From NCBI GenBank assembly GCA_040285825.1, contig JAUPSS010000007.1, forward strand, positions 272,501-336,500: DNA of 64,000 nucleotides. The letters are read 5' to 3'. A program made the translations under genes and the position numbers. Source of the stretch: Eukaryota sp. TZLM1-RC (Eukaryota; Protista; Metamonada: BaSk clade). The notes under the pieces were generated by a model that saw nothing but the letters and a program-made list of their open reading frames with translations, ran no database searches and had not been told where the DNA came from. How positions within the stretch are numbered: the stretch's first letter is position 1; every line of letters starts with the position of its first letter. Shown here in pieces: positions 2,561-63,358 of the stretch.

Positions 2561-2760
2561 TGGTAATCAATATGATAGTTCAAATTTTTTTGTCTGAAAC
2601 ATTTACATCCACACCACTAAAAACACCAATAGAATGGTCCTTGCCTTTTGATTTCCTCATCAACAGTTTCGACGCTGAACCTTAGATGCTACACTTTGCA
2701 AGACAACAAGAAATGTGGTGTCTACATCTATCATTTCCTTCAAGAAACGCAACCTTTGAC

Positions 2761-28074: not shown

Positions 28075-31000
28075 ATAATTATTGGCCGTATTAGGTTATA
28101 GGTATACCGTTTACACAACTCACAGCTATCAAACAGAGGATATCTTCAGCAGATATCATGTCAGTCTCTCCTCGCCAGGACACTGACTCCAGCCAAATTT
28201 TTTACATTAGACAGATGCAACAGTACGACAGAGATGCTTTGAGCATACATACAACATCAGTAGGGACTGAAGAGTCAAATAAAGAAGAGGACTCGGGCTC
28301 GAGACCACCCTCCGCCCCTCCTCATGAGAAAGATATGGAACCAGGCACGAAACCACCTCCCGTCTCTTCCAAATCAAAAACAATGGAACCAGGCACGGAA
28401 CCACCTCCCGCCTCTTCCATGTCCAACAAACCAGATAAGGTTTCAGGAACGGGACCACCCCCCTCCTCACCTAAAGAAAATGTTGAGTTAAGCTCGGATA
28501 CTTCGTCTGCCCTAAAGGACTACGAAGAACTCCAGTCCGTTTTAGAAGAAATGGACGACGATGAAAAAGAGCTTCGCCAACAGATAATGAAGGACGCGGA
28601 AGCTCACCTCGAACCAACAGATTACTGTCTGTTCGAGCAGCTCCCTCCCCTTTGGAAACAAATATCAAAATCTGGTAGAAATGTGGGATTCCAGACTCTG
28701 GGCCATAAAGGGGACCCTAATAGAGTCTACGAATTCCCTCAAAATGAGAGAAGAGAACTCATTAACGCGTTGGACACTTTGAGTAGAGAGACCTATGGAC
28801 GCGGGGCAGAACGCCGTCCTAGGATAGCCGGTATGGATAGAGAAATCCATGTGATTCTGGCAAAACCTATCAAAGTTAGGCCTGATTGGAAAGCCATTCA
28901 TTTAGATCAGTTCGGGAGAAGGATCAGGTTCTTAGCCATCGAACGAAGGAGCAGAACCGATACCGACGACATCCTGGAAACCAAATTACCGGCATGGATG
29001 GATTCGTACTTTGATACGATCATCCATAACTACTCAGAGGTAGAGGATGGGGCTCCTACTTGTTTCAGAGAATACATGGAACAAGCAGACAGCACAAATC
29101 TAAGTAAGTTGGATCCCGTCAGTGACTTCTTTGACGCGGACGCCCTAAATAATATACTTACGGAACGTTCAAGCGTATCCACATTTAGGAGCCGCCCAAA
29201 TAACTTCATTCAGCAATTCGGGGAATCAACGACAAGGAAGAAGAAGTTCAGGTTCTTGGTCACGGGTGATCAATCAACAGAGCTCCACCAGAGACCTAAA
29301 CTTCCTATAATTGCCCCCGTTATATCTGAAAAAGAGCAACCGGTACAAGTCTGTTCCATTGACGTACTCCCTGATCACATCCCAACAGTAGATGTGACAG
29401 AACGAGCAAATAGACCTACCAGAGTGGTTCAGGGACCATCAAGTCCCTCCCAACCTATGCTCACTAGTGCATCAGAAGACGAAGTCGAGTTGAGAGGACC
29501 TAGTTTAGATGAAACACCTCCTCCTCAACCCCCTCGTAGAAGAGTTACTTCTGAGGAGCCTCTCCATTTGGAAAACCTCCAAGCTTCTAGAAACATTTTG
29601 GATATGAGTATAGCAAGTAGTCTTCAGAGACATGTGGACTCTCAGCCTAGGTCAGCTGAACATAAAGCCCCTCACTTATCTGAAAAGGACCCTCTCAACA
29701 AGATGTCACTCGTCTCCTTCCTCCTCAAATTCCAAACATGGGACAAATACGGGCGCAAGATAGCCAATCGAAGCTTTCAAGCCCCTGGTCAATCTGATTG
29801 GTCTCGTGCTATGTTGATAGCAACCCAAATATTTGGCGAAGGAAAGATCCAGATTACCCCTGAGTTGTTATCATCACTCCCATCTCACATCAGAGAAGAA
29901 ATAGACAGGGACATGAAACAGCCACTGTTAAGGATCGACCCAGAACTGACGAAACGTTTGGGACCTCCTATCCATCATTATGACTTATTTAGAAGTATGA
30001 TGATTAGTACTTGTCCATCCGGCTCATCAAGCATGGTCGACCCCCATCTCATCTCTAGATGGCAAGGCCAAGGACTTCTAAGACCGGACTTCTCAGACGC
30101 TGACCTAATGGTTTTTCTGCCACGCAGGACACAATTTACCTCATATCACGAGGCTTGCTCTGCCCTAGCAAATCCATGTATAAATTGAAGAAACATCCAC
30201 AACAAAGTAGATGCGGACAACGAATTTGGTAGGTTCGTCGAAGATTTTGGAGACGTCCTGAGGATGACCACTTATATGGTTGATCACTCCATATCTGCAT
30301 CAATTAGGGGAAGCAGCGGTTTAATAACCCTCTCACCCGCCCTTATTGCAGAATATTTTCTCTTGGGTATAGTTAATTTTGCCATTACCAAGGAGCTGGC
30401 AAGCCATTGGACAAGATAAGATCTATGGGACCCTTCAACAGGTACAACTTTGTTAGACCTGATTTCGACCACCAGGAGACACTTTTCAGCTTGGTGCCAA
30501 ACAACAGGAAATAGGCACACCATGGAACTTTTGAGAAAACAAGCTGAAAGAGAAGAAGACATCCCATTAGGCCTTTCGACCATGAGAACGTTCTCTAGAG
30601 GAGCAACCCCATCTGGTCCATGTGCTAAACGTCGCTCGGGAGGCGGATCCAAAGGAACTCCCCAAAACAAATATGTCCCAGAAAGACATGAACGAGAGGG
30701 ATCTAAGTTCTGTACATTCTGTAACGTCACCGAAGGACATAATCCTATCGGTCACACGGTTTTCGAATGCAAAGACCCCCGTTGTACCAGGAGCAAGGTA
30801 CCAAAAGAATTGAGGTTTAAGATCGGCGAGGCTGATCAGCCTGCGAGAAGTGGAAGTGTAGTTAGAGGCCGAGGTGGCCACGTTAGAGGACATAAAGGTA
30901 GAGGTCAATATAGACCTATTTATTACATAAATACACAAGAGGATACATCATCAACATCATCCCCTTCTGAGAACGTGTCAGCTAGTTCGAGCATGACCTC

Positions 31001-33325
31001 TCACAGACGTATTGACCGTTTCAGCAACAGGGTCAGAAATACAGGAAACTTTCCCAATCGGAAACAAATCAACGCAATCAATCATAATCAATCAATTGCC
31101 GATTTCGGAAACCCAGTTAACAACTCCCCAACAGCTCAACAATTCTTACTAAATCCTCTACAATTCCACAAACCCAGCTCTAATATCAATAGTATTTTTG
31201 GTATAAATTCTACGGTTAGTGAGAACCACATCAGATCCCAGCGTTCTCCATTTCTAAGATTGGAGATTTTAATAAATAATATAAAAATGATTGCAACTAT
31301 TGATTCGGCAGCGTTTTGTTCGGTTATAACAGAAGATTTGGCTAACAAATGCAACATGTCAATTAATAGAGATGATACAATTGAGTTCTTACCAGCCAAT
31401 AACGTATCAAGTAAATCGCTAGGGAGTGCAACTGGTGTTCTGTCGTTCAACGTAGGAAGCATTGCGCACCAGGTACATTATAGACATACTCTTCCCATAA
31501 TCCCGGGTTCGAACAAATTATTAATAGGGATAGACATGTTAAAAACACTTGGGCTTCAGACGGATGATGGTCTTTTCATTAGATTAGACAAAGAACACCG
31601 CACTTTGTTAAATGCAGAATCTGAATTCGACTCAAGAATCGCTCAACATTCGATTGGGACCTTAGATAACCAATCATCGAGTCCTTCCGATTTTGAGGAG
31701 CAGTTAACTAGATCTGGTTGTGAGATAAAATTAGATGATGATGATAATAAATTAAAATTAACGAGTCTACTAAGAATTTTCAGCGATGTTTTTAGTGAAA
31801 CTCCAAACAGAAAAGGAATCGATTGTAAACCTCTAACAATCCCCTTTAGAGACGAGAATGCTATAGTACATAAACCTGCTAGACGATTAAATCCCAGCAA
31901 AATGGAAATAGCAAACAAAATATTTGATGAACTGATTGAAATGGGCTATGCAGTTGAATATAATTATAAATTCAGCTCTCCTATTGTCTTAGTTATATAT
32001 CCTGACGGCAAGAAACCCAGGTTAACGGGAGACTTTAGCGGTAAAGATGGAGTCAATGCCCACACGATTTCAGTAGAGCCTAATCTACCTAGGATTAGTG
32101 ATATTTTAGAATTTTTAAGTAGAGCAGATTACATAGCCACGCTTGATTTACCAAAAGCTTTCTGGCAAATGAATGTAGCAGAGAAGGACATTGAGAAAAC
32201 ATCAATCTCAATCCCTGGAAGGTCAATTATGTTTAAAAGAGCTTGCTTCGGATTAAAAAACATCCCAGCAGTATTTCAAAATATAATGATGGAAATATTC
32301 CAAATTGATGGCGTTTTCATATATATTGATGATATTATAATAGTTGGAACGACTTTCGATGAATTCTATAAGATTACAAAGAGTCCTCCAATGTGCCAGA
32401 AATAGACGTGTAAATATAGGTTTACGTAAATGTAAATTCGTAACATCCAAACACCCTATTGATATTTCAGGAAGCACCTTCCAGGATAAAACCAGATTTA
32501 TTAGTAAGAAAAAAATCGAAGCCTTGATGAGAATCCCTAGACCAAAATCAGTGAAAGAAGTTCGCTCATTGGTAGGATCCATCAATTATATAAGAGATTG
32601 GCTTCCAGGTATATCCGAATAAATAGCTCCAATTAATGAGTTAATTAAAGGAAAACCTAGAGTAATAAAATGGACCAACGAGCATGACGATTATCTTAAA
32701 CCAATAAAAGATTTAATAATTAATCACATGCCCCTTGAATTACCAGCTCCGGGCAAGCGCGTACTAATAAGTACCGACGCATCAGATGTAGCAGTTGGAG
32801 GCGTTGTTTGGCAAGAAATTGAACCATACTCCCCTGCAGGAACCCCGCTGAATAAAAGAAAAGTGAAACCTTTGTCGTTCTATAGTAGATTACTTACAGA
32901 AACACAAAGAAAATGGTCCACTTTACAGAAAGAATTATATGCAATTCTTCTGATTTTAACTGAAAGTTGTTTAGAAAGCTACCTTTTGACTAGACATCTA
33001 ACAATTTTCACCGATCACAAAAATATTGCATTCCTGGCCACGGCCCAGAGAAAAATAGAATTGTAAAGAGATGGCTGCCGATACTATCTGAATTCGACTT
33101 TGATATAGTCCATGAACCAGGTGAAGATAACCACTGGGCAGATATGCTATCGAGGAATATTGATTTAGATCAAAATGAGGAAACTCCTTCTATATGTAGT
33201 ATAAATATACCAGATACTTTACTTTCGAATTACGAGATACCTCCTATAGACGATGATTCTGATTCGGACTTCGAAGACATCCAATCAATTTCATCCCTAA
33301 GTAGACACCAGGACTTTTTGTAACG
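27994..33325 (+). mobile_element. Ty3/Gypsy-like LTR retrotransposon, 3'-truncated (gag-PR-RT-RNaseH; no integrase or 3' LTR seen)
   Basis: One frame from 28158 with in-frame stops at 30186 and 30417. CTFC..H..C knuckle, protease IDSAA, RT (SPIVLV, LDL..AFWQ, YIDD) and RNase H (TDASD, KELYAI, TDH, ADMLSR). RT follows protease directly, the Gypsy order. Confidence 0.9.
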
Positions 33326-33621: not shown

Positions 33622-36022
33622 CTTTCCTTTTTTTTCATTCAGAATTTTTTTATTCAACAACAAAAATGAAAACATTAAATACACAACTAAAATTCCACAT
33701 CCTCAGAAACTGCCTCCCCTACATCAAAACAATTAATTGCCAAAGATTCGGAAAATTGCCCAAAAGAAGAGAAGTGAATCAGAAATTAGTTTCACCATTC
33801 CCTTAAAAATAGAAAAGACAATCCTGTTTTGCCAGTAAACAAGGTTGAAAATTCTTCCAGTTCTTTCCTTTACAACTACAACAAAATCCTCAAGGAAAGC
33901 CATAGCAGCCTCACCTAAAGATCCCAGCAAAGAAAAAACAAAGGGACATAAATTATATTGGGCATGAGAATTTTCATTAATCGAGGAAATGGGTTTCGCA
34001 TATTTAGCAATTTTATATTTTTCGCCTGCAAGAAGAGGATTATTTACATCCGAGTTAATGAGATGTTCGTCAGAGGAATTACAAGGGTCAATAGACATTT
34101 CGTCTAAAATAGTAAAACTACAATTTAAACCGGGAACAACTAGATCACCTCTTGTCAGACCCATAGAAGCTCTGTTGTAATGCGTACTATCAGTATTGGG
34201 ATTATCAAGAATTAATTTTGCGAACAACGGCTCTGAAAAGGAATATACTCGATATGATCTGCACATTACATAAATTTAGTCCCCGACGTTATTATGCACT
34301 TTACTTCTAAATGTAATGAAATGTTTACTGTCCAAAAGATGAGTAAACAAAAGACGTTTACCACATTTACAAGTAAAATGATTGGGCAAATTGTTTGGCC
34401 ACAGAAAACAACGAAAACGCACGTTTAAAAGCCATTCATTATTTTTTAACAAAATTCCATAAACAGAGGGAATTGGAGTTACTAAAGCAGCAGCTGAACT
34501 ATCACGAATATCCTTTAAAAAATTACCGAAAGCGGGATTATTAGTTTTGGTCAAGCCAAATCTTACTTTATAATCCAAGCCTTCATATAATTTAACCAGA
34601 TGGTGCTGAAGCTGTTTCAGGCAAAAACGTAAATTTGGAAGTGATCGGGTGAGAATTTCTTGAACATTTTGAGGAAAACACTGAATCCAGATATCACTAG
34701 TCAAATTATCTAATTCAGTTTGAAGTTGATTCAAATAAAAATTTGATTCACCGTGGATCAGATGAACATCATAAGGAAACCATCATAGGGATTATTATTT
34801 AATTCATTAACCTTTGGAAAAATTCAAAAATAAAATTGTATCCATCTCCTCAAAAAGCTGTTTTACATAAAATCGAAGTTTTCGTGAAACCAATTCCACC
34901 CAATTCAACAGAACAAAAAACATGACTTCGAATTAATGATTCATTTACCTCCAATAAAGAAGAACAAAATTTGACCCGAAGTTTGATGAAAGATCTACAA
35001 AAATCAGGAGATACTGAAGGAGGAATTGACCTAAAATATGAGTGAATTTTCCAGAATAACAAATTCTTAAAATAAAGAATTGGATATGTTTTTCAATATC
35101 AAATTCAGCAATAAAACTAAGATACTTGTCAAAATTCTCCAATAAATTGTTCAACTGGGAATAAAATTCATCCAAATTACCTAACCAGCCTTCAAAATAC
35201 TTGAACCCTTGTTGTTCATAATTAATGAAAGGAATTTGAACATCATCAATCAATAAAGATTGTTTTGTTCTTCCAATCAAAAGACGTTGTCGGGATTCAA
35301 AGCTAATCCAATGTCTTTGTATTCGCAGCAATGTCTTTAGAAACCCTAGAAATGCTTTCATAAGAACCAATAACAGAAATGTCATCCATATAAGCAACAA
35401 TACGTAACTCAGGGAATTCTTTCTGGGTCATTTCAATAGTATTATGAATAGCCAAACAAAAAAGCAATGGACCAAGAGAATCACCTTGTTTGACACCAGA
35501 AGAAGATTCAAAAGTAAAGGTGTCAAAGATTAAGTCCGAATTTTTTCCATAAATTAAGTAAAAATAAGCTGAAAGTTCTGGAAATTCTTGAAGAAGGACA
35601 TCGTAAATGCAATTACGCTTTACTGAATTAAAAGCATTTTTAAAGTCCAAATTGAAAATATACTGATGTTGCTGACTATTGGAAAAAAAACATCTGAAGT
35701 TATTGAGGGAACAGATGCACCTTCAATAGTTTTAATACCAAATTGAAAAGGTTTCAAATAGTCCCTTGCCTCAGTAGAAATTCTATTAAAAATCAGAGAA
35801 GAAGGCAACCTGGTTAAAGACTCTCTATTAGCAATTGGTCTAACTCCATAAGGTTTGTTACTTTTTTCTGGTTTAACTAAAGCAACTACCCGGACAGCAG
35901 TCAATTCAGGTGGAGAAACATAGTTCAAACACATTAAACTTTGAAAATAAATGGCAAGATCCTCAGAAATTTCTGGAGTATTTTTACAAGCAGTTTTTAA
36001 CAAATCAAAAGAAATGCCTGAG
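33622..36022 (-). mobile_element. 5'-truncated degenerate family-C-related non-LTR element (C2) with 10-bp TSD
   Basis: DFKNAFN, GVKQGD, AYMDD, and RGDL..D..EK.K..KY. T-rich tail from 33622. TSD GAAATATCTT at 33612-33621 / 36023-36032. Confidence 0.88.
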
Positions 36023-38505: not shown

Positions 38506-39611
38506 TATGAAAATTCTAAAAAATTACTCTTTATAATTCATCAACCAAAAATCATTGGAAGGGTTTCAATATTGAACTGACAAGTCAATGCTTGAACAAC
38601 ATGATAACAAGATGACTCGCTCGGGGACATGTCAGATCCAGCTAACTCCAATTGAATTCAATAAAGTGTAATACCGATTTGATTCTGTTGTTCTGTTGTT
38701 CTGTTCCATCATCTGTTTCTTTCATCAAATTTCAACAATTTTTCGTATTATGTTGCATATTATTGAATTACTGAGTGGACAATTGGTGAGAATAGAAAAA
38801 CTTATTAGTTAATTGAAACAACTTCCCTTCACCAGTTTTTCCAACACATTATCTATTCAAATTCAATTAAACTTGTGATAAAAAATTGTTTCCGCTGTCT
38901 GTTACACCCGAAGATATGTTTAGGAATGTTAATTCAGTGGATAAAAACATTGTTTAAGAGCTCAAAATTGGACGATATAGGTATTTCTGCTTTTTGAACA
39001 AGATTAATCGGTTTCTAATGTTGTGAAAAAAGAAGGAAGAAATTGTTAATGTTTACAGAAAAGTCAGGGAATTACTGATTCTTGATTGTAATTGTAACTC
39101 CTGTAAAATAACAAAATGGCGCGAATAGAGGTAGCGAACATTGATGTGTTTACCTATTAATACCATAATAAGTGGACAATTTTTGATCAAGTAGATTAAA
39201 ACTATTTCACAGAATTTATCAAGTCAATATAGCGCATTTTAATTCCGAGGAGTTTTGAACAGTTCGTTTCCTTTAATATCAATTTTTTATTTCATCGAAA
39301 ATCCAACAAAAAGAACTTCGGATTTCAGTTAAAGGCAAAGGAATCTGTTTCCTGCAAAAAGTATTCAGAAGTCAGATTTAGACGAATGTAGTCACATTAT
39401 GGCTGACGGTTTACCTTCCATTAACAACCCAATTATTCCTCTTTTTCAATCAGTTCTTCATCAACGGGGCCTTTTTTTCCAAAAGAAAAACAGCAGGGAG
39501 ACTCAAGTAAGTCAAGTTTCTGTAACAAAAAGAACTATTTTAGACTGATGAGCACCCTTTTACCATAAATTATTCTTTAAATAGACCATAAAAGTTTTCT
39601 GTATCTTACAT

Positions 39612-42600
39612 TTTTTTTTTCTTCCTCTACATATAACCGTTTAACTTAAAACCTGGCTGAACCGAGATCATTGCTTCTATTCTTTCTTGTTGATGTCTGA
39701 ATCAGTTTCTGATTCTAATGGAGTCAAAAGAAAGAACGATAGTCAACAAGATGCTCAAGACGTCCTTTCCACCTCTCCTCCTCAACCTCTTCTCTCTTCA
39801 TTTTTGGACAAAAAAAATTCTGATCAAGAATTTTTAGACAATCACGATGAAAAAAAAGTTTGTTCAAAAACAAAGCCACGCTCCTACAGATGCTCAAAGT
39901 GTCGACAACAGGGACATAATGCTCGAACATGCCCCAATGTTGGAAAAAAATGATGCGGCAAATTCTGAAACAAAATGTAAAAGAAAATTTATTAGAAGGA
40001 AAGAGTCTAAGGTAGAACCCATAAATAATGCTCCACAAGTTGTTGCAAAACCAGTTAGCAATCGATTGAAGCACAAAACTTGCAACACTTGTGGTATTTC
40101 TTTTAGAAAAAATGCAAAGGAAAAACTTCTGATCGCTGCTTGAAATGCCGCATAGTTGATAACTACCATCCTCCTATAAGAATACCTCAAGAAATTCATC
40201 CGACCAAATGCAATGAATTTGCTTTCGTTTTTCAAAGATTTTTGGATCAATTATGTAAAGGAAAGTATGCTATCAATATTATTTGGGAATTTTTTGGTTC
40301 TTTTTGTCCTCCTTTTGAACAAAATTTCGTTAATATTTCCGAAGATTTAACCAATATAGCACCGAGAAATCAGTCATCCGAGAAATTAAGTAAAATTTTT
40401 GAAGACAAATGCTTTGACAACAAATGGTCCAAGGCTTTGTCAGCTTTAAGTCCTGGAGTCAAAGCACCGAACAATGAAAATACAGTAGATAAACTGAAAA
40501 TACTTCATCCTTATGAAGACCCTGTTATGGATCAAAATTTTTACGGCACATACTGGGAAAATTATCCATTGATGCCATCAGAAGTTTTTTCGGTTATCAA
40601 AAAGAGACCTCGTGGTAAGTCTGCCGGACTTTCTGGTATTACTATTGATCATGTAAAAGCCGCGATTATTTCTTCAGAAGATTGCCTTGGTTTATTGACC
40701 AAATTTTTCAACCAAATATTATCTGGTCAACGCAAGTACCCAGAAGAATTGAGAAGTTCTCGTTTGACTGCACTTGTCAAAAATTCAAAAATGGATGTTC
40801 GTCCTATTGCAGTCTCTGAGAGCTTACATAATATTTTTTCTGCGTGTTGCTTAAGCAGGTTCAATGAAAAAGCTAAAAAGATTTTATTACCCTTTCAATA
40901 TGGTATAAATACTACAGATGGAGTCTCTTCAGCGATTTTTGCTACTGATGTCTTATTTCGTCAAAATGAATCCAATGTGTGCATGTCATTGGATTTTAGT
41001 AATGCTTTCAATTCGCTAAGTCGTCGCAGTATCCATGGTGCTCTATTGCAATATATGCCAGAATTAATACCATATTTTCAATCAACATATTGCACATATT
41101 CTAATATACATTTTGGTAACAACATTTTGATTTCATCAAGTGGCGTAAAGCAAGGAGATCCGTTAGGACCTCTTTTGTTTTGTTTGGCCATTCATCCTAT
41201 TCTACTGCAAATTCAAGAGATGTTTCCTTCACTAAAAATGATTGCATATATAGATGATGTTGTGCTTATTGGTGAATTAAATATTGTGAAAAAAGCAACT
41301 GTATGTTTTAAAGAATTATTTACCAAAATTGGTCTCCGACTTAATTTACTTAAATGTGTTTTGTTATCGAATTCTCCAGTTTCCACAATAATTGTTGATA
41401 TTGAAATTCAAGCCAAATTATATTCAATTGATGCTATTCGTCATTTGGGTTCGTTTTTAGGAAATAATGATGAAATTACCAAAAAATTGTTTGAAAAGTT
41501 GAACTCAATTTCTGACAAAATTGACCGAATGATGAATTTAGATATAAAAAAACACATCAAATTTACCATTATAAGACTGTGTTTTAGTTCCAATTTTAAT
41601 CATATATTTCGATCTACAAATCCTCTCGTCACTAGATCTTTGGCTCAAAAGTTTAATGAGTTACGTGCAAAAGTTCTGTCTCAATTACTGGGATGTAAAA
41701 TGTTTCAAATTCCAGATCATGCCTACCTTAGTCCACAATATGGTGGTTTAGGGTGGACGAAGGCTTCTATTCTTACCTCGTGTGCTTTTGTTGGTGGATG
41801 CAGAAATGCAATCTTTGAGTTCTCCGAAAGATTTGCAGATTGGGAAGATTTATTGATGACAACGCAAAGTTCCACTGTTTTTGCATTAAATGAAGAAATT
41901 TCAAGAATTGATGTAGAAAAATGGGGTCGATGTTTTCCCCAATCATTCAATGGCAATATTCCAGAAAAAAATGTTTTAAATTTGAAGTACACTCTTCGAA
42001 CATTACAGAAAAGATTGACTGGAATGCATGAAAAAGATCTTTATAATAATATTTGCAGCTCGGCTGTTTTAAATCAAGATCTTCACTCATTGTTATTGGA
42101 AAAGGGTGTTTGTGAAAACAAGGTGTCAGATTCTTCACTTTTTGTAACCATTGTACCACGAAGATTTGGATTGTGTGCTACTAATGAAGCATTTGTAACA
42201 AAAATGAGATTATATTTGAACATCCCCATTAACCAATTATTATCAAAAGAAAAATGTATTTGTTCGAATTCACCTCAACTCACTTTGCGCCATGCTCTAA
42301 ATTGCTCTAAATTGATAACTTATCGTTCTTCATTACATGATGCTGTTAGAGACACTGTTTTCAATATGGCACAAACTGCAAGGATATCGTGTATCAAAGA
42401 GCCCCTGCTGAAAGAAACACTTTCTCTGAATAATTTTGGTTCTGATGATAGAGGTGATGTATACTGTGATTGGATTGATAATTCTGAAGCTATTGTTGAC
42501 TTTTGTCTCATGTAATGTTGCAAACGATACTTTGGTTCACAGAAGAAAACTTAATCCTGTGGCTGCTCTGGATTTTAAAGCAAAAGAAAAACATAGAAAA

Positions 42601-42951
42601 TATGATAAAGAAATTGAAGATGCAAATATCGATAGAAATACACAGCTGGTTTTTATTGCTTTTCCATTTTCGATAAATGGAAGATTATCAGTTGAAGCAG
42701 AAACTTTTTTTGGATGACTTCCAAAAAATGGTGAAAGAAAAAACAATGAAAAGATTTGATATTTTTTTATGGCGTTCACGGATTCAATTTGCCATTATTA
42801 ATAGATTACCGCGGTTTTTCAATCGAATTAGAGAAGCTTTAGCTAGACAGCAAGCAAATCAAGATTTTGTAGAGGAAATCTTGGTTTAATGATAGTCGTC
42901 CCATTAGTTATGATTTAATTTAATCAAGTGTGCAAATTCAATAAATTAATA
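39612..42951 (+). mobile_element. Full-length family-B non-LTR retrotransposon (copy B2), inverted relative to B1
   Basis: ATG 39693 to stop 42889 with four homopolymer indels. RT reads YIDD. TSD ATCTTACAT at 39603-39611 / 42952-42960. Starts with a T-run. Confidence 0.95.
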
Positions 42952-43589
42952 ATCTTACATGAAAAATAAATATTCTACTGAAAACTATTTTGTGTGGCTA
43001 AACATACAAAATCTTTCCTTAATGCATCATGAAATTGTGATTGGAAAGGAACAAAAAGGACCGTGAAACAGGGCACACAATTGCTTGTTGATAAGTGTCG
43101 GTATTCAAATTAATTTTACATTAATGGAACAAATAGTAAGGGATGTACTACCCCAATAATACTGAAATAAATCACTATTCAATAAATATTCAATATTCAT
43201 TAAATATTGTGTAGGTCTTTTCGCTGACAAAAACTAATAGGTCCTCCAATGTCACAGTGTTTGACAAAAATGCTGACAATTTAGAAAATCTAAAAATATG
43301 AACTCAAAAGTAGACATATTCCATTACTGATTTGATTTGAGAACCACTGCATTTCAGAGATTCTTATTTTTCCCAGGTGGATTACCTACATTGCGAATAT
43401 CAGGACACTTGATGAGGTATGGGATTGGTCTAGGTAATCTTTTGCTAAAAACTGGTTTAAAGCAATTCAAAAGTTGTAAATCATGTACCTCAATACACTG
43501 TGTTTTAAAAAGTACAACAATGATTAAATCTTTTTTTAAACACTTTTTAATTTATTACTTTCAAAAAGCTGAACACAAAGATTGAAATT

Positions 43590-46717: not shown

Positions 46718-47912
46718 GTAAGTTTTAATTTAATAACTGTTTTAGTTTTTTATTTATTTAGATTGTTGTGTTTCCAGGTTTGTTTTCTAATTTTAGGTTT
46801 TGTTACAGTTTTAACTGTTGAAAATAACTTGTAGATTTGGTTATAGATTATTGTGTAGACGATTTAATAAATCTTATCCTCAATTATTATAGTTATTATA
46901 GTTATTATAACACATTCACAGATTCACTAATTTAGCTTTAAAGTATAAAGAATTTTATTGATGAAAACCGGTCTGGTGAACAAAAAAACCTTTACTGTCA
47001 AGGGTTGGGTTTCTTGAAGGAAATAATAGATTTAGACACCACTTTTCTTGATGTCTTGTCAAAGTGTAGCATCTAAAGGTTCAGCGTCGAAACCGTTGAC
47101 GAGGAAATCTTAAGGCAAGGACCATTTGATTGGTGTTTTGGTGGTGGAGTTATTACGCGAAAAACATTACGATGAAATGACTGTAGATAAAGTTCTTGAT
47201 ATTAAGAATGAAAATTAAGGAAAAAGTTTGTTACCGTTTTATAGTATTAAATGAAAAGAAATACTTGAATCATTATCAAAACAATGAGGTGTTTGGTAGT
47301 GTTAACTATCAAGTTTGACCAGTTGGAATTGTTTTCTAAGAAAGAATGCTTTTGCTGAGTGATAAGGTCAGTATTATTACACAAATATATCAAATAAGTT
47401 GTTTCAATTTGGGTAATATTTTTTATTGATGGCAATGATTAAACATGTTTGACAGAAACGTTCTGTTCGATTTTTAATCTCACAATTGTTGTTTAACGAT
47501 TAATGAAAATCAAAAATACACAATATAATCACAAACTGTTTTAATGATGCCACATAATGCAACATATTCAGCTTTTGGGTTATTTTTATTACACTCTAAA
47601 TGTTTTCATGTTGTATGTAATTGTTAGCACAAAGGGTACACTTGATTTCTAAAAATACCATTTTAAATAAGTGCGCCAAGTTTACAGGCGCGCGAAAAAA
47701 AAAATCAACTCTTCCTCCAGACCAAACATTTCCCACTAATGGAAGCAAATGGCAATACTTTGAAAATTAGTATAAATTTCGATTCAATAGCGATTTTTTA
47801 TTCGTGCATAAATATATTTTTAATCATTGTAATTTTGGTTGTATATATCAAAACTCTTTTTTGGCATGGTCTTTTCAGAACTCTTGACAATTCAATACCA
47901 TTATTTATGAAT

Positions 47913-49036: not shown

Positions 49037-49804
49037 CGAAGAGAAACTTGCAGAAAAATGAAGGCGCGAAAATCATTTTTCCTCACCCAATTTGCTGATT
49101 CTGTGATGTGCAATAAATAACATATAATTCATATGCAAAATCAGTAAACAATGGTATATGTTCGTTTGTTAATCAAAAAGCAACAGAACACTGTTTTGGA
49201 AAATATCTTCTGGGTTAACCAATTTCATAGGGATTATTGCAACTGTTGATCAAATACCACAAGTAAACTAAGTTTATGTTTCTTCATCATCATTAATTTT
49301 GAAATCAAGAATCTCTCTTTTCTTGCTAGAATCAAACTCTTTCATTGCAGCCAATTGTTGTCCTCTTTTTATTGTATCATTGGGATAGAAGTTGTTGTCA
49401 ACTTTGACAATTATTAACAGTAGTTCATGAATTTTGGCAGCAGTCATCTTTCCCATAGATACAAGTGAGGCATAAGCTCCTTGTTGTAACAATATGAAAT
49501 TACGAATAGAAAGTTCTCCAGAACAAAATTGTTTCAAGGTATAAGCAACAGCCCACCCACATAAGCAACTGCTTGATGATCGAAGATAACAATAGACGTA
49601 GTGAGTACAATTTTAGTCTTAAATTGTTATTTTTTGATTCCAGGTTTAATCACAAGCAAGTGAGTGTTGATGACCACCATAAATTTTGTGTTGATTACAA
49701 ATATTAATTATTTTTGGTGATATGTAAATTTCAACTGTTGGCAGTATTGTTTTGTTTCAAGTTGATTCAAAACATGGTTTCATTGTGCCAATGATCTTTA
49801 CAAC

Positions 49805-52800
49805 TTTTTTTTTAAAACTGGAATATTTATTGAGATAAAAATAACCATCTAGAATTCAATATCCTCCAAACAAGCGTCACTATTACTGAACCTACTCACA
49901 GCATTACGTTCATATTCTACACCAATAGCTAAAAGTGCCTTTGAAATCATTGTTGGAATGGACTTGAAAATGCAAAAAACAATTCTATTTAACCAGAAAG
50001 TGGAGTTCATTGTTTTACCAGACCTATTCAGTAACACTTTTTTAAAATTTTCCAAAAAGTGCAAGCCTGAAGGACCAATATTGCCAAAAAGAGAAATAGC
50101 AAACGGCACAAACTGATATTTCACATGTTCCACTCTACCTAACTGTGCCAAAGGTTCTTCATATTTTTTTATCTTCTTTTTTTCGGCGTTAGATAACGGC
50201 GAGTCAGCGGAATACACTAAACGAGCAGCAGAATTTTTGCAAACATCCACGGAGACAACGTCTACAACATTGAGAACACCATCGATCCCTGGAGCTACTA
50301 AATCTGCCCTTCTTTTACCAAAGGAATCATCAGTTTGATCTGAAGACAGCTTACGTACTAGTGGCTCAATAAATGCCTCTATATTGAAACTTTTGCACAT
50401 GGCATATAATTGATCACGAACTGAGTCATGAACAAGTGAGCGATAAGTTATGAAATACTTACAGTTTAAAATATGGGAAAGCGTAACACCACTCTTGCAG
50501 CGACAAATTAAATCATTTGGCAATGAACAAGGCCATAGAAAACATCTCAATCTCATTGCAGTGGTCCATTGGTGATCATTAAGTAGAAGGCCGTAAATGT
50601 TGGGAATTTGGGAGATTAAGCAACTTGAGCAACTGTCTTCAAGATCAATCAAAAAGTTTGCAAAACGGGATTTTTTTCCTTAGCCAAGCTAAGACGTACA
50701 ATATAATCCAAGTTTTCTAAAACTTTCAAAATTTTTTTCTGCAATTTTGCAAAAGTCAATGGTAAGGAGAGCAAGCTTCTTGAAGGAAGTTCCACAATAT
50801 CAGAGGGGAAACATTTAGCCCAAATATTGGGTGAAAGAGTTTCAATTTCCTGTTGCAAAGAAATAAGATAGGAGCTGCCACAATTTTCAATGAGATGAAT
50901 TTTTTCAGGAAAACGATTCACAAATTCATAAATAAAATTCTTTCTGCCTCCAATAAAGGCAGCTTTACAAAGGTAGCTTGACTTATGAAAATCAACACCA
51001 CCAAAATTTGTACCACAAAAAATGTGGCTTCGTAACTGAGATGCATCAATTTCCAATAATTTTGCTAAAAAATTAGTTCTTTGTTCATTAAAAATGCGAC
51101 AGAACTCCAAGGAAATTGATGGTGATGTTGATCTCAAAATATGAGTAAATTTTCCAGAATAACAGATTTTGAGGAAAAAGAATTTCAAATGTTTCTCAAT
51201 ATTTAAATTTTCTATTGATTCTAATTCATTTCCAAATTGAGTCAACAGAGTCGAAAGTTGGCTTTTCACTTCATCAATATTTCCGAGATAACAACCCAAA
51301 ACACGAAAACCAGACTGATCATAATTGATAAAGGGGACATTGACATCATTAATGAAAAAATCAATTGGTTCATGACCAATAATCAAACATTTGGAGATAT
51401 TCAATGAGAGACCAATATCTTCATAACGCTGTTGAATAAAAGTTGCTATTTGTTTCAGAATTGTAATAGGAGCAATTACAGAAATGTCATCCATATATGC
51501 TACAATATCTATTTCTGGGAATTTTTCTTTCAATTCGCACATTAATGGATGAATTGCCAGACAAAAGAAAAAAGGACCAAGTGGATCACCTTGTTTAACA
51601 CCTGAAGACGAAAGCAGGTCAAAATTTTCATAGACCAATGTGGATGATTTTCCATAAAATGAATAGAAAAAAGGCTCAACTTCAGGAAAATGTTTTTGCA
51701 GCAAAGGTAAAATGGAAGAACGAGATACAGAATTGAAAGCATTCTTAAAATCTAAATTGAAGATGTAATTAGAATCACTAGAATTAAAAAACACATCCGA
51801 CGAAAGAGCAGCAGAAGAAGCACCATCAATCGTCTTGATTCCAAATTGAAACGGACTGAAAAATTCCTTGGCTTTTTTTCCAATTCTATTGAAAACAAGA
51901 GACGCAAGAATTCTTGAAAAAGATTCTCCAATTGCAATTGGACGGATTTTGGATTGACTTTTTTTAAGGGCAATTAAGCGAGCACTGGTCATCTCAAAAG
52001 GGACTTTAATTTTTAACGTAAGAAGATTGTTGAAAAAAAGAACAAGATCGTCAGCAATTTCAGGACACTGTCCAACAGCTGATTTGATCATGTCAAAATT
52101 CAACAAAGATGGCCCAGGAGCTTTTCCAGTAGGCATTTGCTGGATCAGTTTCAATACCTCAGAAGCATTGACAGGATTTTGCAGCCAATAATCAACTGAA
52201 TCTGGTTTAGTACAATGAAAATTTTCTTCCGGATGAAGATGATTCAATTGGAACAATGTGCTTTCATTACATTCAGCTAAATCAGAAGAAAATAAACATT
52301 GTTTTGCAGATCCAAAACGTCCTTTTAAAGCTAATTTTCTCACTAATTTTTCTTTCGAAAAAACATTTTTTTTTAAAATTTGATTTTTTCGATAAAAGTT
52401 TTTTATCTTTTTTCAGAAAAAATTTCCAAATAGGCGTAACATCCCATAATCCTTTACGGAGATTTTCAGTAAAGGCACGAAGAACAACAGCAAAAGGTAT
52501 CGAAGCCAACGGACTAAGCTGAGCAGGAACACGAATGGGACAACGTAGCTGATCAGCAGCAACACAAGAATCACAAAAAAGTAAAGGTCGACCGGAATCA
52601 TTGACAGCAACAAGCTTTCGACAAAAAACACATTTTTTTTCATCCTTTTGATCTTCTTTGATAGGAGTGTTATCGGGAATCTCACTTAAAAATTCATTTT
52701 TAGGATTGTGTGATAACGAAAAATTTAAATCAGCAATTGCAGCACGAGCATTCAGTTTTTCCTTTTGAATAAGCGGACAAGTTGCAATGTTATGTCCGGA

Positions 52801-53076
52801 TTTTCGACATTTACTACATTTGCGGCGGGGTTTAGAAAAATTTTCATTTAAGTTTTTTTCCAATGATTTTCTAGCATGGAGTGACAGGTGGGGAGAATGA
52901 GAACGATTGGTGGTTGAGGAGGTTGGTTTGTCAAGATCACGTTCGGTACTTTTTGCAGTCCAGTCAGTATCATTGAGAGTGTCTGACATTAAGACTGGAG
53001 GAATTCAATCGAACCGACAATAGGACGTCAAGTTAAGAAAAAGGAGGACGTTGAAAGTGAGTGAGAAAAAAAAATT
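49805..53076 (-). mobile_element. Full-length family-A CRE-like non-LTR retrotransposon (copy A3)
   Basis: ATG 52989 to stop 49849 with two homopolymer frameshifts. CSKCRKSGHNIATC, CVFC..CDSC, RT (RPIAIGE, GVKQGDPLGP, AYMDD), CRC..H...C, RADL..D..AEKKKIKKY. A tail 49805-49813. TSD TCTTTACAAC at 49795-49804 / 53077-53086. Confidence 0.95.
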
Positions 53077-55224
53077 TCTTTACAACCCAAACCCTAATAT
53101 GTCATTTCAGTTTAGTAAGCAAGAAAGTGATCACAACCACATGAAAGAGTGATATTTGATTGGTGATTTGATTTTGTGTTTGCTATTTTCATGATTCTGA
53201 CCATTTATATGGCGGATTCAGCCACAAATCTCATAAACATAGGTCAGAAAAGGATATGTCTAGGTCTTTTAAAATGTCTCTTCTTCCTCCCTTTTTTCCC
53301 ATCAAATATGTTGTTGTTCATCTTTTAACCCACATTCCAAAGATAGAGTACGTCTGGGTTTTAGTTCAGTTTTAATTATTTTGAAATTTGTTTTCTAATT
53401 TCAGGTTTTGTTATAGTTTTCACTGTTGAGAATATTGATTGTAATGAAATCCCAACCCTGCCAATGAAAAATTCCAAGTAGAATAGAAAAGACATAGAAT
53501 AATGTGATCTTTTCTTTGCTGCCACTAATCTACAAAATCATCTTTACAAATAATTTCAATGTGTCAATTGTCATGCAATACTAAGACTGAAGGGACAGTT
53601 TTTGTGTGTTTGGTGAATTATAAATTGCATTAACACTGTGTCAGATTAAATCATTTTTGATTATTGAACAGGTACTGTGTGTACAAACAACATATTTTTA
53701 ATATACTCATCCTACTCTACACCCCCTTTATTTATTTCATTAATACAATATTGATAACTACGCAAGTGTTGAATTCATGAAAAGAATTATTCAGAAAGAC
53801 TAAACACATGTCTTGATAGAAGAATGAATCGTACAGTTGAATGGAAGTTAAATCCGTTGATGTTGCCTAACGTCCAATGGGGTTAAAGGAAATCTGTCTT
53901 AGGGCGCCGACATTGATATAGGAATTCTGTGAAAATCACAGAATTTGATGATATCTGACCAATGTCTACAGTTTAATCGATTAAACTGCTGTCCTCGTCT
54001 GCAAATAGAACACATATGCATTCACGGGATTGTTTCTGCTTTAGCATTTGCGCCAAAGTGCTTGTCATAACAGATATCGGCACATTCCGCTGGAAGTGTT
54101 CATTAAACAGTTTCTCAGCTTGACTGACAACATTTTGGAATGCTTGAACATACTCAGATCTTTTCATCACCCTTTTCCATTTAGTTGGCTGTTCAGTGAG
54201 GAAAGATGCAATGATTAAACACTGATAAGCTTATACAAAAACCTTTACTTGTTCCCCTTCCTCTTGTTGACAAGCAAGTGGAAATAATGATTAAACAAAG
54301 TCAATTCCAGTAGGATCTGAAGGCCGTCAGCTATCTAAATCTTCTCCAGTTTTTGAGTATCTTGGGAAGGTAAAGTATGATGCCTTGTATGTGGCATCAT
54401 TAGAACCACTAGTTTTGAGAATCGATGTTGATTCAAGTAAACAACCATTGCACAAAGCACCCACTGAACCTCCTTCTTGTGTTTTCCATCTTGTACAGGA
54501 GAAAATAGAAGCAGACAGACCAGATCAAATTGCACGAAATCTGCAACAAGATCTTTTAGTACCTGATTGTGTAGATAATGAACTTACCTGACCTATGAAT
54601 CTCTTACCTCAATACATATCCACTGCTTACAAATTACCATTCCAATGTACTACCTCTGATCAACTCAACTGGTAGGGGCAAGACCCGGTTCAAAATAAAG
54701 TATGAAGATTAAAAAAGTATAATGTGGCATCGTTTTGAAGCTTGCTACATGTTTCGATCATGAACCTGGTTCAAGTTTTTAGAATTTACAGGTACATGTT
54801 GAATTTCAAATAACATCAAGTGCCAAATAGGACTGACCAGAAATTTGATGTGGGTCGAGTTGAGTTTCAGTTATTCTTGTATCCAGTGACACAAATCCTC
54901 CTTAACATCGCCATAGCCTCAGTTCTCTTCCCATCTTCGTTATGTGTGGGGGTTGTTGTTATTTAGTGGTTTTGTCTAAATCGTGGTTTAATTCACATTG
55001 AAATTATTCGTTTTAATTTATTTATACCCACAAATAGCAACAAAATTCTATTTCTTAATAGATATCAGCAATTAAAATGCACTGAATTTAATGAATCGAA
55101 ACATAATCGACATCAATATACACTACTTTTAGAGACTGAATTAAACCAGAATTCTGTAATTAAGACATAAATAAAAAACTTTTATAAAAACAAATCACAA
55201 AAAACGACAAATGACAAAAACAAT

Positions 55225-56307: not shown

Positions 56308-57129
56308 TTTTAGAGCCAGTGATTTGATTTTTTTGACACCACAATTTTGTGCTAGAGAAACATGCAGAAACCCCTCGTCTTTTGAAGCCCCTGAGGTCAA
56401 ACGTCCACGTTCAAAAAGAATAAGTAACAGTAATTTTACACATGAAACGAGCTTTCTTCTTGAGACATGAATAATTCAATATCTCAATTTAATCATGTTT
56501 GGTTTCTCAATCACCCCATACTGCGTTATCAGTCAATAGATATGACTAAGCTGCCAGGTTTACAAAGCCTTTCTACACATTCTTCAATTTAAAATAACAA
56601 AAAACTGGGCACAACAGACTAAATTCAAACTTACAGATATAAGGGTTCTTTATTTTAACAGAAAACTCGCATTGTCATATTGGCAGAATGAGCTTTTGGT
56701 TTTTGTCACATTTTTGGTAGTTGGAGGGAAATGCTATTATGACTTCAATAATAGTGAGTCAATGATCCATTGTAAATCATGTAATGAACCATTCTATTAC
56801 TATTGGATATTCTGGACTTTTTGAGACAGACTTTGTATTCAAAGTTTCTTGATCCTCTGCACTCTACAGTTAATCAATGTCGCCATATTGTCAAGTCTTT
56901 CAGGGAAATGAATGTTACCATTTATTATACCATTTTGTGATAACAGTGTTGTTGTTGCTTCTGCTAAAAGTCATCTCTTCAAACAAAATATTAAAAATAT
57001 TATCCTTAAATGAGAATAATGTTGATCAAGAAATGTTAGCATCTATACCTGTAAATTCATTCACTTGTTCTCCAAATATAAGTTTATTTTTGTACTCAAG
57101 ATTTGGGAATTAATTCTTTATGCTGACCA

Positions 57130-59520
57130 TTACTTTTTTGCGAATGCTGTAAAGTTATAGATTGTTAAAGGCCTCCAATACGTGTTTCAGCACAGGTACG
57201 TCCTCTTTTTTCTATCCCCTTTTCAATTTGTTTGCGAAAATTTGCTAATAATTTAAAAACAGGAATATGGGATGTCACACTGTTGTGGAAATTCTTCTTG
57301 CTTAAAGTTAAAATTCATTGTCTTTCAACTCCAAACTTCGCCGTTCTGTTATGAAAAAAGAAAAATTGTTTGCAAATTAGCTTTAAAAGGACGTTTTGGT
57401 TCGCTAACAAATGCCTATTTTCATCAGAACTTGCTGAATGTAATGAAAACATTTTTGCTCAGCTTAATAACCTCCATTTAATTTGCAGATTTCAAGTGTT
57501 TCAAACCCGATAATGTTGATTATTGGTAATAGAATCCCCTAACTAAAGATAAATTGCTAAATTAATTAATAATTTACCCTCTGGAAAAACACCTGGACCT
57601 TCAATGATAACCTTCGCTATGTTAAAATCAACGATGAACCAATGTTCCGAATACATTGATGATTTGGTCTCCTTTTTCAAAATTTTTTTTTAACATTAAT
57701 AATGAAGCTTCCATCTAAAATGACAAGTTTGCGTTTAATTGCTTTATAAAAGAATGAAATGAAAATAAGACCAATTGAAATCGGAGAATCAATGTCTCGT
57801 GCTCAGTGTCTCTTGCTTTACGTGAATCTCTTTTTTACAATTCCTACTGGTTCTCAATTAACACTTGTATATAAGTAATTTAATCCAATCTTATCATCTG
57901 CTGTCAAACAAAGTGATCCATTAGGTCCTTACCTTTTCCGCCTTGCTATTCATCCTTCAATGTGTGAAATAAAACAAAAATATCCAAAAATTGAAATTAC
58001 AGCTTATATAAATGACATTTCAATAATTCATCCAATTGATTCAGTGAGAAAAATTGCTAAAGTAGTTCAACAGCGCTGTTATGAAATTGGTCTTTCTTTA
58101 AATTTTTCCAAATGTTTTTTTGACTGGTAGAGAGTCTGGTACACTTGCTATTGATGATCAAATTGTTACTTTTATCAACTATTTTGAATCAAGGCAATTT
58201 TGATGAAATTCAAAATCAACTTTCCTCTCTTTTAGCAAATTTTGAAGAGTAACTGATTATTCATTCAGATTGAGATTTTGAAAAACATCTTACATTTTTC
58301 TTTCTCAGAATTTGTTATTCAGGGAAATTTACTCATATTTTACGATAAACCTTGCCATCTATATTTTTCGAATTTTGCTGAATTTTTAATAAATTAGGAA
58401 CAGAATTTTTGGCTAATTTGCTTGACATTGATTCTTTTTTACTAAGTTTTATTTTTTGTAGCACAGAATTAGGAGGCCTTAATTTTGATAAATCTAAATA
58501 TTGGTGTAAAGCTGCATTTACTGGTGGAGGCAAAAATTCCATTTTTGCATTTTTGAAATATTTTCTTGAATAAGAAGAATTAATAGAATGTTGTGTTGGT
58601 GGTTATTTGGTGTCTTTGCAGAATGAAATCGGATGCCTCTCTCCTCAAATATGGTCCAAATTCTTTCCTATCGATATTCAAGAAATTCCACCCAGAAGCT
58701 TTATTTCTTTAAGATTTGGATACACCAAATTGCAGAAAAAAATATTAAAAGTTTTTGAATACTTGAATTTTACTGTAGATCTTCACTTATCTAAGAAAAA
58801 GAATCCCGTTTTTGCTAACTTTTGAATTGATCTTAAGGAAAGTAGCTCAAGTTGTCTCATTTCCCAAATTCCAAATGTTTATGGCTTATTGTTAAATGAC
58901 CATCAATGGACAATTGCCCCAAGGATGAGGTGTTTTTTGTGGCCATGCAGTGTGCCAAATGATTTGATTTGTGTTTATGGTCAGCTTATCAATCTGAATC
59001 AATTATTTAATAGAAAATTTGATATTACATATCGCTCAGTTGTTCACGATGCTGTTAGAGACCAACTATACGCTATGGACAAATGTCATCGCATTGATGC
59101 TTTTGTTGAACCTCTTGTGCGTAAGTTGTCATTTGAAAATGATGATAATACTTTCAGGAAACGCTGTGCTGATTTAATTACTCCTGGGTCTGATGGTGTG
59201 ATCAAATTTGTTGATGTTGTCACTGTTGACGTTTGTAAAGAATCAGAAATTGATTTTACAATTGATTTTGAAGATGAAACTCCTCTTTGCTTTGCTGAAA
59301 AGAGCAAAATCAAAAAGTGCAGTGAACCCGTAACTCCGCTCTCTTGAGCATCGGTGTCTTGAGCATTTGAAGTATGAGCTGGTTCCATTTGATGTTTCTC
59401 TTTTTGGTCACATTGGAATATCTGACATTAAATTTCTTGAAGGTTTCAGATGTTTAATAAAGGAAATAGCAGGAGAAGAGTTGAAGTTTAATTTATGGCA
59501 CAGCAGAATTGTTTTTAGTA
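57130..59520 (+). mobile_element. Old, heavily degenerate family-A-related non-LTR element
   Basis: KLALKGRFGS, GKTPGPS, IRPI.IGE, VKQ.DPLGP, LLNDHQWT, VHDAVRDQLY, ADLI; many stops. Confidence 0.85.
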
Positions 59521-60072
59521 TACTGACTTAAAGGTCTATAGCGATATGAGGATCAATAATATCACATTGGAATTTATTCGAGAGCTCATTAGCATAGATT
59601 AAATTCTCTAGTTTAATGTTTCTCTTAAGTTATACAAGCTAATTGTAATTTCAAGAAGCTTATCGGCAAAAGGATATCTTCTAGAAAAATCAAAACAAAT
59701 TTTTTTCCACCACCACACAATGTAATGTTGGTCAAATATTTTAATGAATTGAAAGTCTTCTTAAAGACATTGTGATGCAGCATACATAACAAGTTTTTGA
59801 AACAATGTTTGAAACCAGAATGGTATTTTCAATTGTGTAGAGAAAATTTGGGCAATTAATTTTCAGTCACATTAGTTCTTTATCAAGTGTTGTAGAAAAG
59901 AAATAGAATTGCTTTGTATTGAAAAAACATCATCCATATAAGCAATTATCGTTTGAGTATGAGCTATTGGTTGTGAATGTACGCTGTGTTTCGTGCACAT
60001 TGGAGAATGGTGGTTTCAAAATTAACTTTATTTCATTGTTGAAACATTTTCAGCTGCTCTCACCACACCTAG

Positions 60073-61393: not shown

Positions 61394-61954
61394 TTAAACA
61401 CGAGCAGCATTAGTAAAGGCCTTTGAGGCTAAATAACCAGCCAATCGTTTCTTCGCATCCTTCCTGCACTTGATATACCCAATAGCATTGGTCATTCCAA
61501 AGATGATCCCCACAACAGCCAATATCATGTGATAGGTGTCCATACCAAGGAAGAGCAGGGTGCGGAGAAGAATGAGTCCAATCCAGACGAAAGGATAAGA
61601 AATAAGCACAGTCCAAAAGACACGAGTATCAGAAGCAGAAATGACAGAGGGGTCACTGAGAGATTCAAATACCCATTCGGAGCTTCCGTCCTCATTGATT
61701 TTGTTCCAATAGCGGAGACCAACGAGAAGGCGTCCGGTAACGTTCTTGACGGTCCAAAAGTCGCATGCTAACAGTGTTATAGTGATGGCAAACCATATAA
61801 CAACGCTGTCAGGGGAGAGGAACCAGGAGACTACTGCGACTGCCTTGAAAAGAACATGGAAGAGAGCGGCAGTGGGATGCTTAGAGTTTTGACGTACAGA
61901 CTGTACAATTGAGGTTGGTTTAGTGTTTTGAGTTGTTGAGGCTTCTTCGGACAT
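61394..61954 (-). CDS. TVP23: Golgi membrane protein TVP23/FAM18 (ECHIDNA)
   Basis: HP.A.LFH..FK, DFWTVKNVTGRLLVGLRYWN, EDG.S.WVFES family signatures. Confidence 0.95.
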   Translation of the reverse strand: MSEEASTTQNTKPTSIVQSVRQNSKHPTAALFHVLFKAVAVVSWFLSPDSVVIWFAITITLLACDFWTVKNVTGRLLVGLRYWNKINEDGSSEWVFESLSDPSVISASDTRVFWTVLISYPFVWIGLILLRTLLFLGMDTYHMILAVVGIIFGMTNAIGYIKCRKDAKKRLAGYLASKAFTNAARV

Positions 61955-63358
61955 CAGTTAATGATAGAAATATCTCAAATAGAGGTAACTTGTTGAGATT
62001 ATAGTAGGAGTGAGATTTGAATCAATTTGGTCTACCATTTGATACATTTTTTATTCAAACAAAATTGTAAAAAACTAAAAATCAATCTCCTCAAACTCCA
62101 CATCTATTATTGAAAACTTACCTACAGCATTTTCTTCATAAAATTTTCCTAGTGACGAGCTAGAAACAAGGCTATACATTCCCTTAAAAATACACAATAC
62201 AATTCTGTTGAGACTACTGCGACTGCCTTGAAAAGAACATGGAAGAGAGCGGCAGTGGGATGCTTAGAGTTTTGACGTACAGACTGTACAATTGAGGTTG
62301 GTTTAGTGTTTTGAGTTGTTGAGGCTTCTTCGGACATCAGTTAATGATAGAAATATCTCAAATAGAGGTAACTTGTTGAGATTATAGTAGGAGTGAGATT
62401 TGAATCAATTTGGTCTACCATTTGATACATTTTTTATTCAAACAAAATTGTAAAAAACTAAAAATCAATCTCCTCAAACTCCACATCTACTATTGAAAAC
62501 TTACCTACAGCATTTTCTTCATAAAATTTTCCTAGTGACGAGCTAGAAACAAGGCTATACATTCCCTTAAAAATACACAATACAATTCTGTTGAGACTAC
62601 TGCGACTGCCTTGAAAAGAACATGGAAGAGAGCGGCAGTGGGATGCTTAGAGTTTTGACGTACAGACTGTACAATTGAGGTTGGTTTAGTGTTTTGAGTT
62701 GTTAAGGCTTTTTCGGACATCAGTTAATGATAGAAATATCTCAAATAGAGGTAACTTGTTGAGATTATAGTAGGAGTGAGATTTGAATCAATTTGGTCTA
62801 CCATTTGATACATTTTTTATTCAAACAAAATTGTAAAAAACTAAAAATCAATCTCCTCAAACTCCACATCTACTATTGAAAACTTACCTACAGCATTTTC
62901 TTCATAAAATTTTCCTAGTGACGAGCTAGAAACAAGGCTATACATTCCCTTAAAAATACACAATACAATTCTGTTGAGACTACTGCGACTGCCTTGAAAA
63001 GAACATGGAAGAGAGCGGCAGTGGGATGCTTAGAGTTTTGACGTACAGACTGTACAATTGAGGTTGGTTTAGTGTTTTGAGTTGTTAAGGCTTTTTCGGA
63101 CATCAGTTAATGATAGAAATATCTCAAATAGAGGTAACTTGTTGAGATTATAGTAGGAGTGAGATTTGAATCAATTTGGTCTACCATTTGATACATTTTT
63201 TATTCAAACAAAATTGTAAAAAACTAAAAATCAATCTCCTCAAACTCCACATCTACTATTGAAAACTTACCTACAGCATTTTCTTCATAAAATTTTCCTA
63301 GTGACGAGCTAGAAACAAGGCTATACATTCCCTTAAAAATACACAATACAATTCTGTT
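61827..63358. repeat. Tandem array of 4 x 383 bp (TVP23 5' CDS + promoter + retroelement 3' end)
   Basis: Units start at 61827, 62210, 62593 and 62976; near-identical, with three variable sites seen. Confidence 0.97.

Follow-up and report, generated by a model that had tools for sequence, protein, structure and literature searches.

What kind of mobile element occupies positions 49795-53086 of the 64,000-nt stretch of DNA analysed here (hereafter, the window; contig JAUPSS010000007.1 of assembly GCA_040285825.1), and how freely does it choose the sites into which it inserts? The DNA comes from isolate TZLM1-RC, that is Skoliomonas litria, a free-living anaerobic metamonad (PMC11603281), and an initial annotation of the window had proposed that the element, here called A3, belongs to a set of compact retrotransposons with a restriction-like endonuclease (RLE), which insert without a shared target and amount to an undescribed system. 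Based on the window together with twelve further loci of the same assembly (designated by L-numbers; about 270 kb, with no overlap with the window), which were picked around reverse transcriptase (RT) genes and do not sample the genome at random, we conclude that A3 and its relatives are very probably autonomous, R2-type retrotransposons without long terminal repeats (non-LTR, or LINE-like, after long interspersed nuclear elements), which are dispersed and have a short nick-site preference.

A3 is a full-length element (Table 1) whose open reading frame (ORF) lies in three collinear pieces separated by two 1-nt shifts, both in homopolymer runs, and which, when read through these shifts, comprises ~1,046 codons. 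The single ORF of ~1,050 aa that had been proposed is recovered in this form as a collinear frame, and not as an intact one, every assembled copy being interrupted. A family profile built from 46 members plus distant relatives aligned with the R2 proteins 9nl3_A and 9dou_A over positions 260-956 (E 3e-39, 138 bits), and the alignment spans the RT, the linker, the CCHC motif and the PD, D and K-x2-KY motifs of the endonuclease; the endonuclease motifs are conserved in the families termed A (to which A3 belongs), B and F. An AlphaFold model of an 872-aa ORF from a copy of a further family, E, was obtained with a predicted local distance difference test (pLDDT) score of 81.9 and a predicted template modelling (pTM) score of 0.80, and in a Foldseek comparison of this confident model with the PDB, R2 proteins took the first seven places (E down to 5.6e-25, TM 0.58-0.66), with LINE-1 next. 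LINE-1 ORF2p itself scored 52 bits against the profile, solely over the RT/thumb part, and no Pfam match to the apurinic/apyrimidinic endonuclease (APE; exo-endo-phosphatase) domain was obtained in any ORF piece, even at E 10; a LINE of the APE type was rejected on these two grounds. Homology and the modelled fold identify the elements as non-LTR retrotransposons with a predicted RLE, in agreement with the type first assigned to them.

At the N-terminus, A, B, E and F share a retrovirus/gag-like CX2CX4HX4C knuckle and a C4 finger, and no match to a Myb or C2H2 domain was found in this region. The untranslated regions (UTRs) are of about the length that had been estimated: the 5' UTR, put at ~80-90 nt, measures 80-87 nt in all four families, and the 3' UTR, put at ~40-60 nt, measures 44 nt including A9 in A3. 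Neither an Rfam match (at E 0.1) nor folding better than that of shuffled sequence was detected in the UTRs.

Across the sample, four young families were defined, namely A (3.27 kb), B (3.34 kb), E (3.49 kb) and F (3.41 kb), with within-family identity mostly of 96-99%. The earlier estimate of ~3.3 kb for a full-length copy holds for A (3,272 bp) and B (3,340 bp); a size of 3.3-3.5 kb is at the small end of the R2/CRE range and is not exceptional. The sorting of the window's seven insertions into four families has to be revised, as C1 and C2, formerly joined, are ~64% identical at the DNA level, C2 belongs to family F (88% identity), and D represents yet another family, which occurs in L006 and L011 too. 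While A, E and F terminate in poly(A), family B is without it and carries instead a conserved AT-rich 3' end followed by 3-17 variable bases before the target-site duplication (TSD). Such bases are seen at window positions 42947-42951 and 19999-20009 and in the B copies of L003, L005, L007 and L008, and they look untemplated. About one third of the copies that keep their 3' end are full length; the others are 5'-truncated, the smallest to 58 bp, and 5' junctions show extra bases and microhomology. A proposal that family E is a unit of ~900 bp was rejected, as its copies reach upstream to the 3.49-kb element.

Some details of the 5' ends deserve a separate mention. All four families open with a run of T8-9 and then a CT-rich tract (window positions 39612-39630 and 53058-53076; L002:9915; L004:21654). 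In a 5'-truncated B copy at L003:14933, a T run stands at the 5' junction, although it is absent from the parent sequence at that place. At L001:7637-8527, a 5'-truncated E copy lies within a B copy, is flanked by a TSD of 13-14 bp, and shows extended, imperfect microhomology between target and element at the point of truncation.

The seven direct repeats of 8-12 bp that were listed at the outset all lie exactly at element junctions, that of C1 with one mismatch. Our curated set comprises 32 insertions with a TSD; a split-alignment search added two events, its yield being otherwise mostly repeat-family artefacts. TSD length ranges from 5 to 21 bp with a median of 10, and this spread means that the nick stagger is variable and not fairly constant, as had been supposed. 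It could be argued that AT-rich DNA yields such flanking repeats by chance, or that they mark the edges of segmental duplications and are not TSDs, given that some E copies do share flanks through tandem or segmental duplication, and that matches of 7-8 nt are common in a chance control in which the 5' and 3' junctions of different copies were paired within loose junction windows. However, in the same loose windows, matches of at least 9 nt were found in 52% of true junction pairs vs. 6.6% of 2,000 mismatched pairs, so the initial expectation that the duplications exceed chance in AT-rich flanks was borne out. Further, the repeats abut the element ends exactly, and single-copy empty sites exist for C1 and for 13 nested insertions. 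An uninterrupted paralogous site with one copy of the 8-mer at window positions 46997-47004 is direct proof that C1 was inserted with duplication. For the nested insertions, the empty site can be read from uninterrupted copies of the host element, and the host sequences on the two sides of the insertion overlap by the length of the TSD. With the mismatched-pair control and both kinds of empty site against it, an origin of the repeats by chance or duplication is extremely improbable, and it was rejected in favour of genuine TSDs.

The 32 target sequences are all different. No long consensus was found, none of the sites is in ribosomal DNA (rDNA), and among the 32 there was no spliced-leader, U2 small nuclear RNA (snRNA) or tRNA gene target. 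The claim that no target is shared is nonetheless not supported, since alignment of the sites on the TSD start, taken as the inferred first-strand nick, revealed position-specific biases. For A and B together (n = 16), T occupies position -3 in 14 of the 16 sites (p 9e-6; background 0.34, given A at +1 and non-A at -1) and position -4 in 12 (p 6e-4), C is found at -1 in 8/13 sites of E and F (p 5e-4), and A follows the nick at +1 in 23 sites of the whole set (p 6e-6). At the TSD end, which marks the second (top-strand) nick, no position departs from background. Target choice is relaxed but not random, with short, lineage-specific biases that can be written as TTNN/A for A/B vs. YC/A for E/F, the slash marking the nick.

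Other copies serve as the target of at least 16 of the 32 insertions, a proportion which raises the possibility that the elements are target-specific after all and home to their relatives or to one repeat, such as the family E 3' UTR, with the dispersed copies as exceptions. In keeping with this, three independent insertions (one of A and two of B) cluster within 12 bp of one another in the 3' UTR of family E (L001:14430-14440, L003:17290-17300 and L003:18739), and two more share a T-rich stretch in the coding region of host elements. Nevertheless, because the elements account for about 40% of the sampled DNA at the protein level (roughly 30-90% per sampled stretch), and because the loci were picked around RT genes, nesting of about half of the insertions is close to expectation and does not indicate self-targeting. 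Both hot spots are T-rich and contain several TTNN/A matches, so that the short motif explains the clusters in the E 3' UTR and in the coding stretch alike. Moreover, A3, A1, B1, B2 and the B copies in L007, L008 and L011 are in non-element DNA, as unique intergenic insertions adjoining ordinary genes. We regard homing to relatives or to a single repeat as very unlikely and keep to dispersed insertion, into unique intergenic DNA and into each other, as was initially described.

These features are consistent with the following scheme. In one frame of about 1,050-1,120 codons, an element would encode the zinc knuckle and C4 finger, the RT, the CCHC linker and a C-terminal PD-(D/E)XK endonuclease. 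A T-ended 3' OH, freed at the nick, would prime on the A-rich tail of the RNA, and reverse transcription would often halt early, leaving 5'-truncated copies; a second nick, made on the other strand 5-21 bp downstream, would give rise to the TSD. The domain content with its homology to R2, the TSDs with their empty sites, the tails and truncations, the scattered targets and the biases at the nick are observed directly, and what we infer is the order of the nicks, the part of the protein that reads the motif and whether any copy is active at present.

Several observations weigh against dispersed R2-type elements with a nick-site preference, or against parts of that interpretation. No TSD could be detected for two full-length E copies, and the nick motifs rest on 16 + 13 hand-curated sites. 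The excess of A at +1 comes partly from the delimiting of TSDs beside a poly(A) tail, although A at +1 also occurs at 8/10 of the first sites of family B, which is without poly(A). Finally, an intact ORF was found in 0/13 full-length copies in the assembly, and current activity is consequently unproven. The families may in fact be extinct, with genuine frameshifts and stops and nothing in the genome still transposing, and the three in-frame stops in one E copy (L005) are what such relics would show. On the other hand, of 40 indels seen when copies are compared, 26 alter a homopolymer (5 or more) by a single nt, a pattern typical of the residual error of R9.4 Nanopore reads; the assembly was made from such reads with Illumina polishing (PMC11316075), and repeats are poorly polished by short reads. 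The homopolymer indels fit residual Nanopore error in repeats, yet could be real. Taking into account also the copies that are 98-99% identical, their perfect TSDs and nesting up to three deep, we find extinction of all families somewhat unlikely.

Comparison with known systems clarifies what is new about these autonomous elements. In protein architecture they share with R2 (Bombyx R2Bm and zebra finch R2Tg; PDB 8gh6, 9dou and 9nl3) the order of RT, linker, CCHC and C-terminal endonuclease, within what would be a single ORF, and R2 provides their best profile and structure matches. R2 inserts at one 28S rDNA site by way of C2H2/Myb domains at its N-terminus, its UTRs are long and structured, and it makes no long TSD (cf. 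PMC10499050). In contrast, the Skoliomonas elements have a CCHC knuckle and C4 finger, unstructured UTRs of 44-87 nt, dispersed targets and TSDs of 5-21 bp, and the 28S site, C2H2/Myb domains and structured UTRs by which the R2 clade is strictly delimited are absent from them. In function, EhLINE1/EhSINE1 of Entamoeba histolytica is the closest precedent, likened here by published behaviour, with a different nick motif. EhLINE1 carries two ORFs in about 4.8 kb. The pair is of the restriction-enzyme-like endonuclease class without targeted insertion, and the EhLINE1 enzyme has a short, degenerate nick consensus (bottom strand GCATT), T-rich upstream, with TSDs of up to about 22 bp (PMC1635306).

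According to Kojima and Jurka, target specificity prevails in four of the five RLE clades, whereas HERO holds many non-specific families (PMC4640811); HERO is defined by RT phylogeny, and the likeness drawn here is one of insertion habit, mostly non-specific in both. RLE types are on record in protists as NeSL/Utopia and CRE/SLACS, including NeSL-1_TV from Trichomonas, itself a metamonad, and weak specificity is known for some Utopia families (PMC4640811). CRE/SLACS and NeSL/Utopia target spliced-leader, U2 or tRNA genes, none of which was encountered at the 32 Skoliomonas sites. With LINE-1, the elements have in common a degenerate nick motif whose element-strand version ends in A, variable TSDs, 5' truncation and, presumably, A-rich-tail priming, while LINE-1 differs in its N-terminal APE endonuclease and in a weaker match limited to the RT part. 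Cumulatively, these are new families in an unstudied host, and the suggestion of an undescribed system has to be withdrawn, since non-targeted elements bearing such an endonuclease have already been described in HERO (PMC4640811) and in EhLINE1/EhSINE1 (PMC1635306). They do add a second protist case, beside Entamoeba, of an R2-type endonuclease without site specificity.

In a quick tree of the RT-to-endonuclease regions (LG+G4), all sequences of three Skoliomonas species formed one clade (support 100), and a long branch parts this clade from its nearest outside relatives, which are metagenome proteins with 20-30% identity. Atlas searches by features and by shape returned only 'hypothetical protein' clusters. 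Family B is the deepest branch within the Skoliomonas tree, and one lineage mirrors the species tree, (RCL, (S. litria, GEM-RC)), as published (PMC11603281), which implies that several lineages predate the species split; as several deep lineages are common to the three species, the earlier word 'radiation' was a fair one. A bolder proposal would place the Skoliomonas clade beyond the five RLE clades recognised so far, as a deep lineage in which the zinc-finger (ZF)/Myb region was swapped for the gag-like knuckle and C4 finger, and in which sister families diverged in 2-3-base nick preferences (TTNN/A vs. YC/A). We consider this unlikely; if true, such a lineage would represent a natural series of a restriction-like LINE endonuclease losing and retuning its target choice. 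The apparent difference in nick site between sister families is in any case a small, testable handle on target choice, a subject of current interest with R2 proteins being developed for gene insertion. Retrotransposons are unmentioned in the S. litria genome paper (PMC11316075), and NCBI lists hundreds of element fragments as hypothetical proteins (locus tags P9112_); both gene annotation and work on genome architecture in Skoliomonas must account for these elements.

Table 1. Element A3, its parts and the other retrotransposon copies in the window (positions are those of the 64,000-nt stretch; aa, amino acids).
Feature	Position	Strand	Details
A3, full-length family A element	49805-53076	-	3,272 bp, A9 end; 98.7% identical over full length to L001:14436-17703
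A3 TSD, 5' copy	53077-53086	.	exact 10-mer; just two occurrences in window
A3 TSD, 3' copy	49795-49804	.	exact 10-mer
A3 5' UTR	52990-53076	-	87 nt: two A, T9 run, CT-rich tract; no significant RNA fold
A3 ORF piece 1 (N-terminal)	52282-52989	-	235 aa
A3 zinc knuckle CX2CX4HX4C	52777-52818	-	within ORF piece 1; conserved in A, B, E, F
A3 C4 finger	52561-52632	-	within ORF piece 1; conserved in A, B, E, F
A3 ORF piece 2, RT and linker	50649-52343	-	564 aa; RVT_1 at 51357-51965, PF00078 E 5e-24
A3 ORF piece 3, CCHC motif and predicted PD-(D/E)XK RLE	49849-50652	-	267 aa
A3 endonuclease region	about 50008-50505	-	C-x-C-x7-H-x3-C, RADL, VVDVVS and K-x2-KY motifs align with R2 endonuclease
A3 3' UTR	49805-49848	-	44 nt including A9 tail; no Rfam match; fold z-score -0.67
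B1, full-length family B	39612-42951	+	9-bp TSD, 39603-39611 / 42952-42960; no poly(A)
B2, full-length family B	19999-23344	-	9-bp TSD, 19990-19998 / 23345-23353; three extra bases at 5' junction
A1, 5'-truncated family A	9379-9933	+	9-bp TSD at 9370 / 9934
A2, 5'-truncated family A	17333-19239	-	no clear TSD
C1, 5'-truncated, further family	2761-5341	-	8-bp TSD (2753 / 5342), one mismatch
C2 (earlier label), 5'-truncated family F	33622-36022	-	10-bp TSD (33612 / 36023)
D, 102-bp 3' end of another family, inside C1	3735-3836	-	12-bp TSD (3723 / 3837)
Family E 3'-end fragment, about 60 bp	2920-2979	+	21-bp TSD, 2899-2919 / 2980-3000
Decayed copy of related family	57088-59522	+	about 45-60% aa identity to A; no TSD found

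When the A3 pieces were used as tblastn queries, about ten copies or fragments with a total length of about 18 kb were recovered from the 64-kb window (Table 1). A 383-bp unit carrying the last ~40 codons of such an element is also present at 61827-63358, where it occurs four times in tandem with 99-100% identity. At 28158-32405, two long plus-strand ORFs are found in GC-richer DNA (41-46% GC), the second of which matches an aspartyl protease and an RT; these matches suggest an LTR-type retroelement that is unrelated to the A3-type elements. Full Ty3-like polyproteins are encoded at L002:2359-6583 and L005:1126-5351.

Rearranged copies were seen at two of the other loci. At L003:8273-17390, E copies and one and the same 268-bp fragment of another element alternate head to tail, the pattern recurring about every 3.75 kb, and these E copies have common flanks and no TSD. 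A 2.8-kb tandem unit at L004:6334-11679 contains an inverted E fragment (about 2950-3477) that abuts a direct E fragment (1465-3478), and may have originated by inversion during insertion, with duplication later. Lastly, a 651-aa gene at L008:7473-9428 (together with a gene cut at L008:1-52) has a weak match to the Pfam family Cas12f1-like_TNB, and may encode a Fanzor/TnpB-like nuclease of S. litria.

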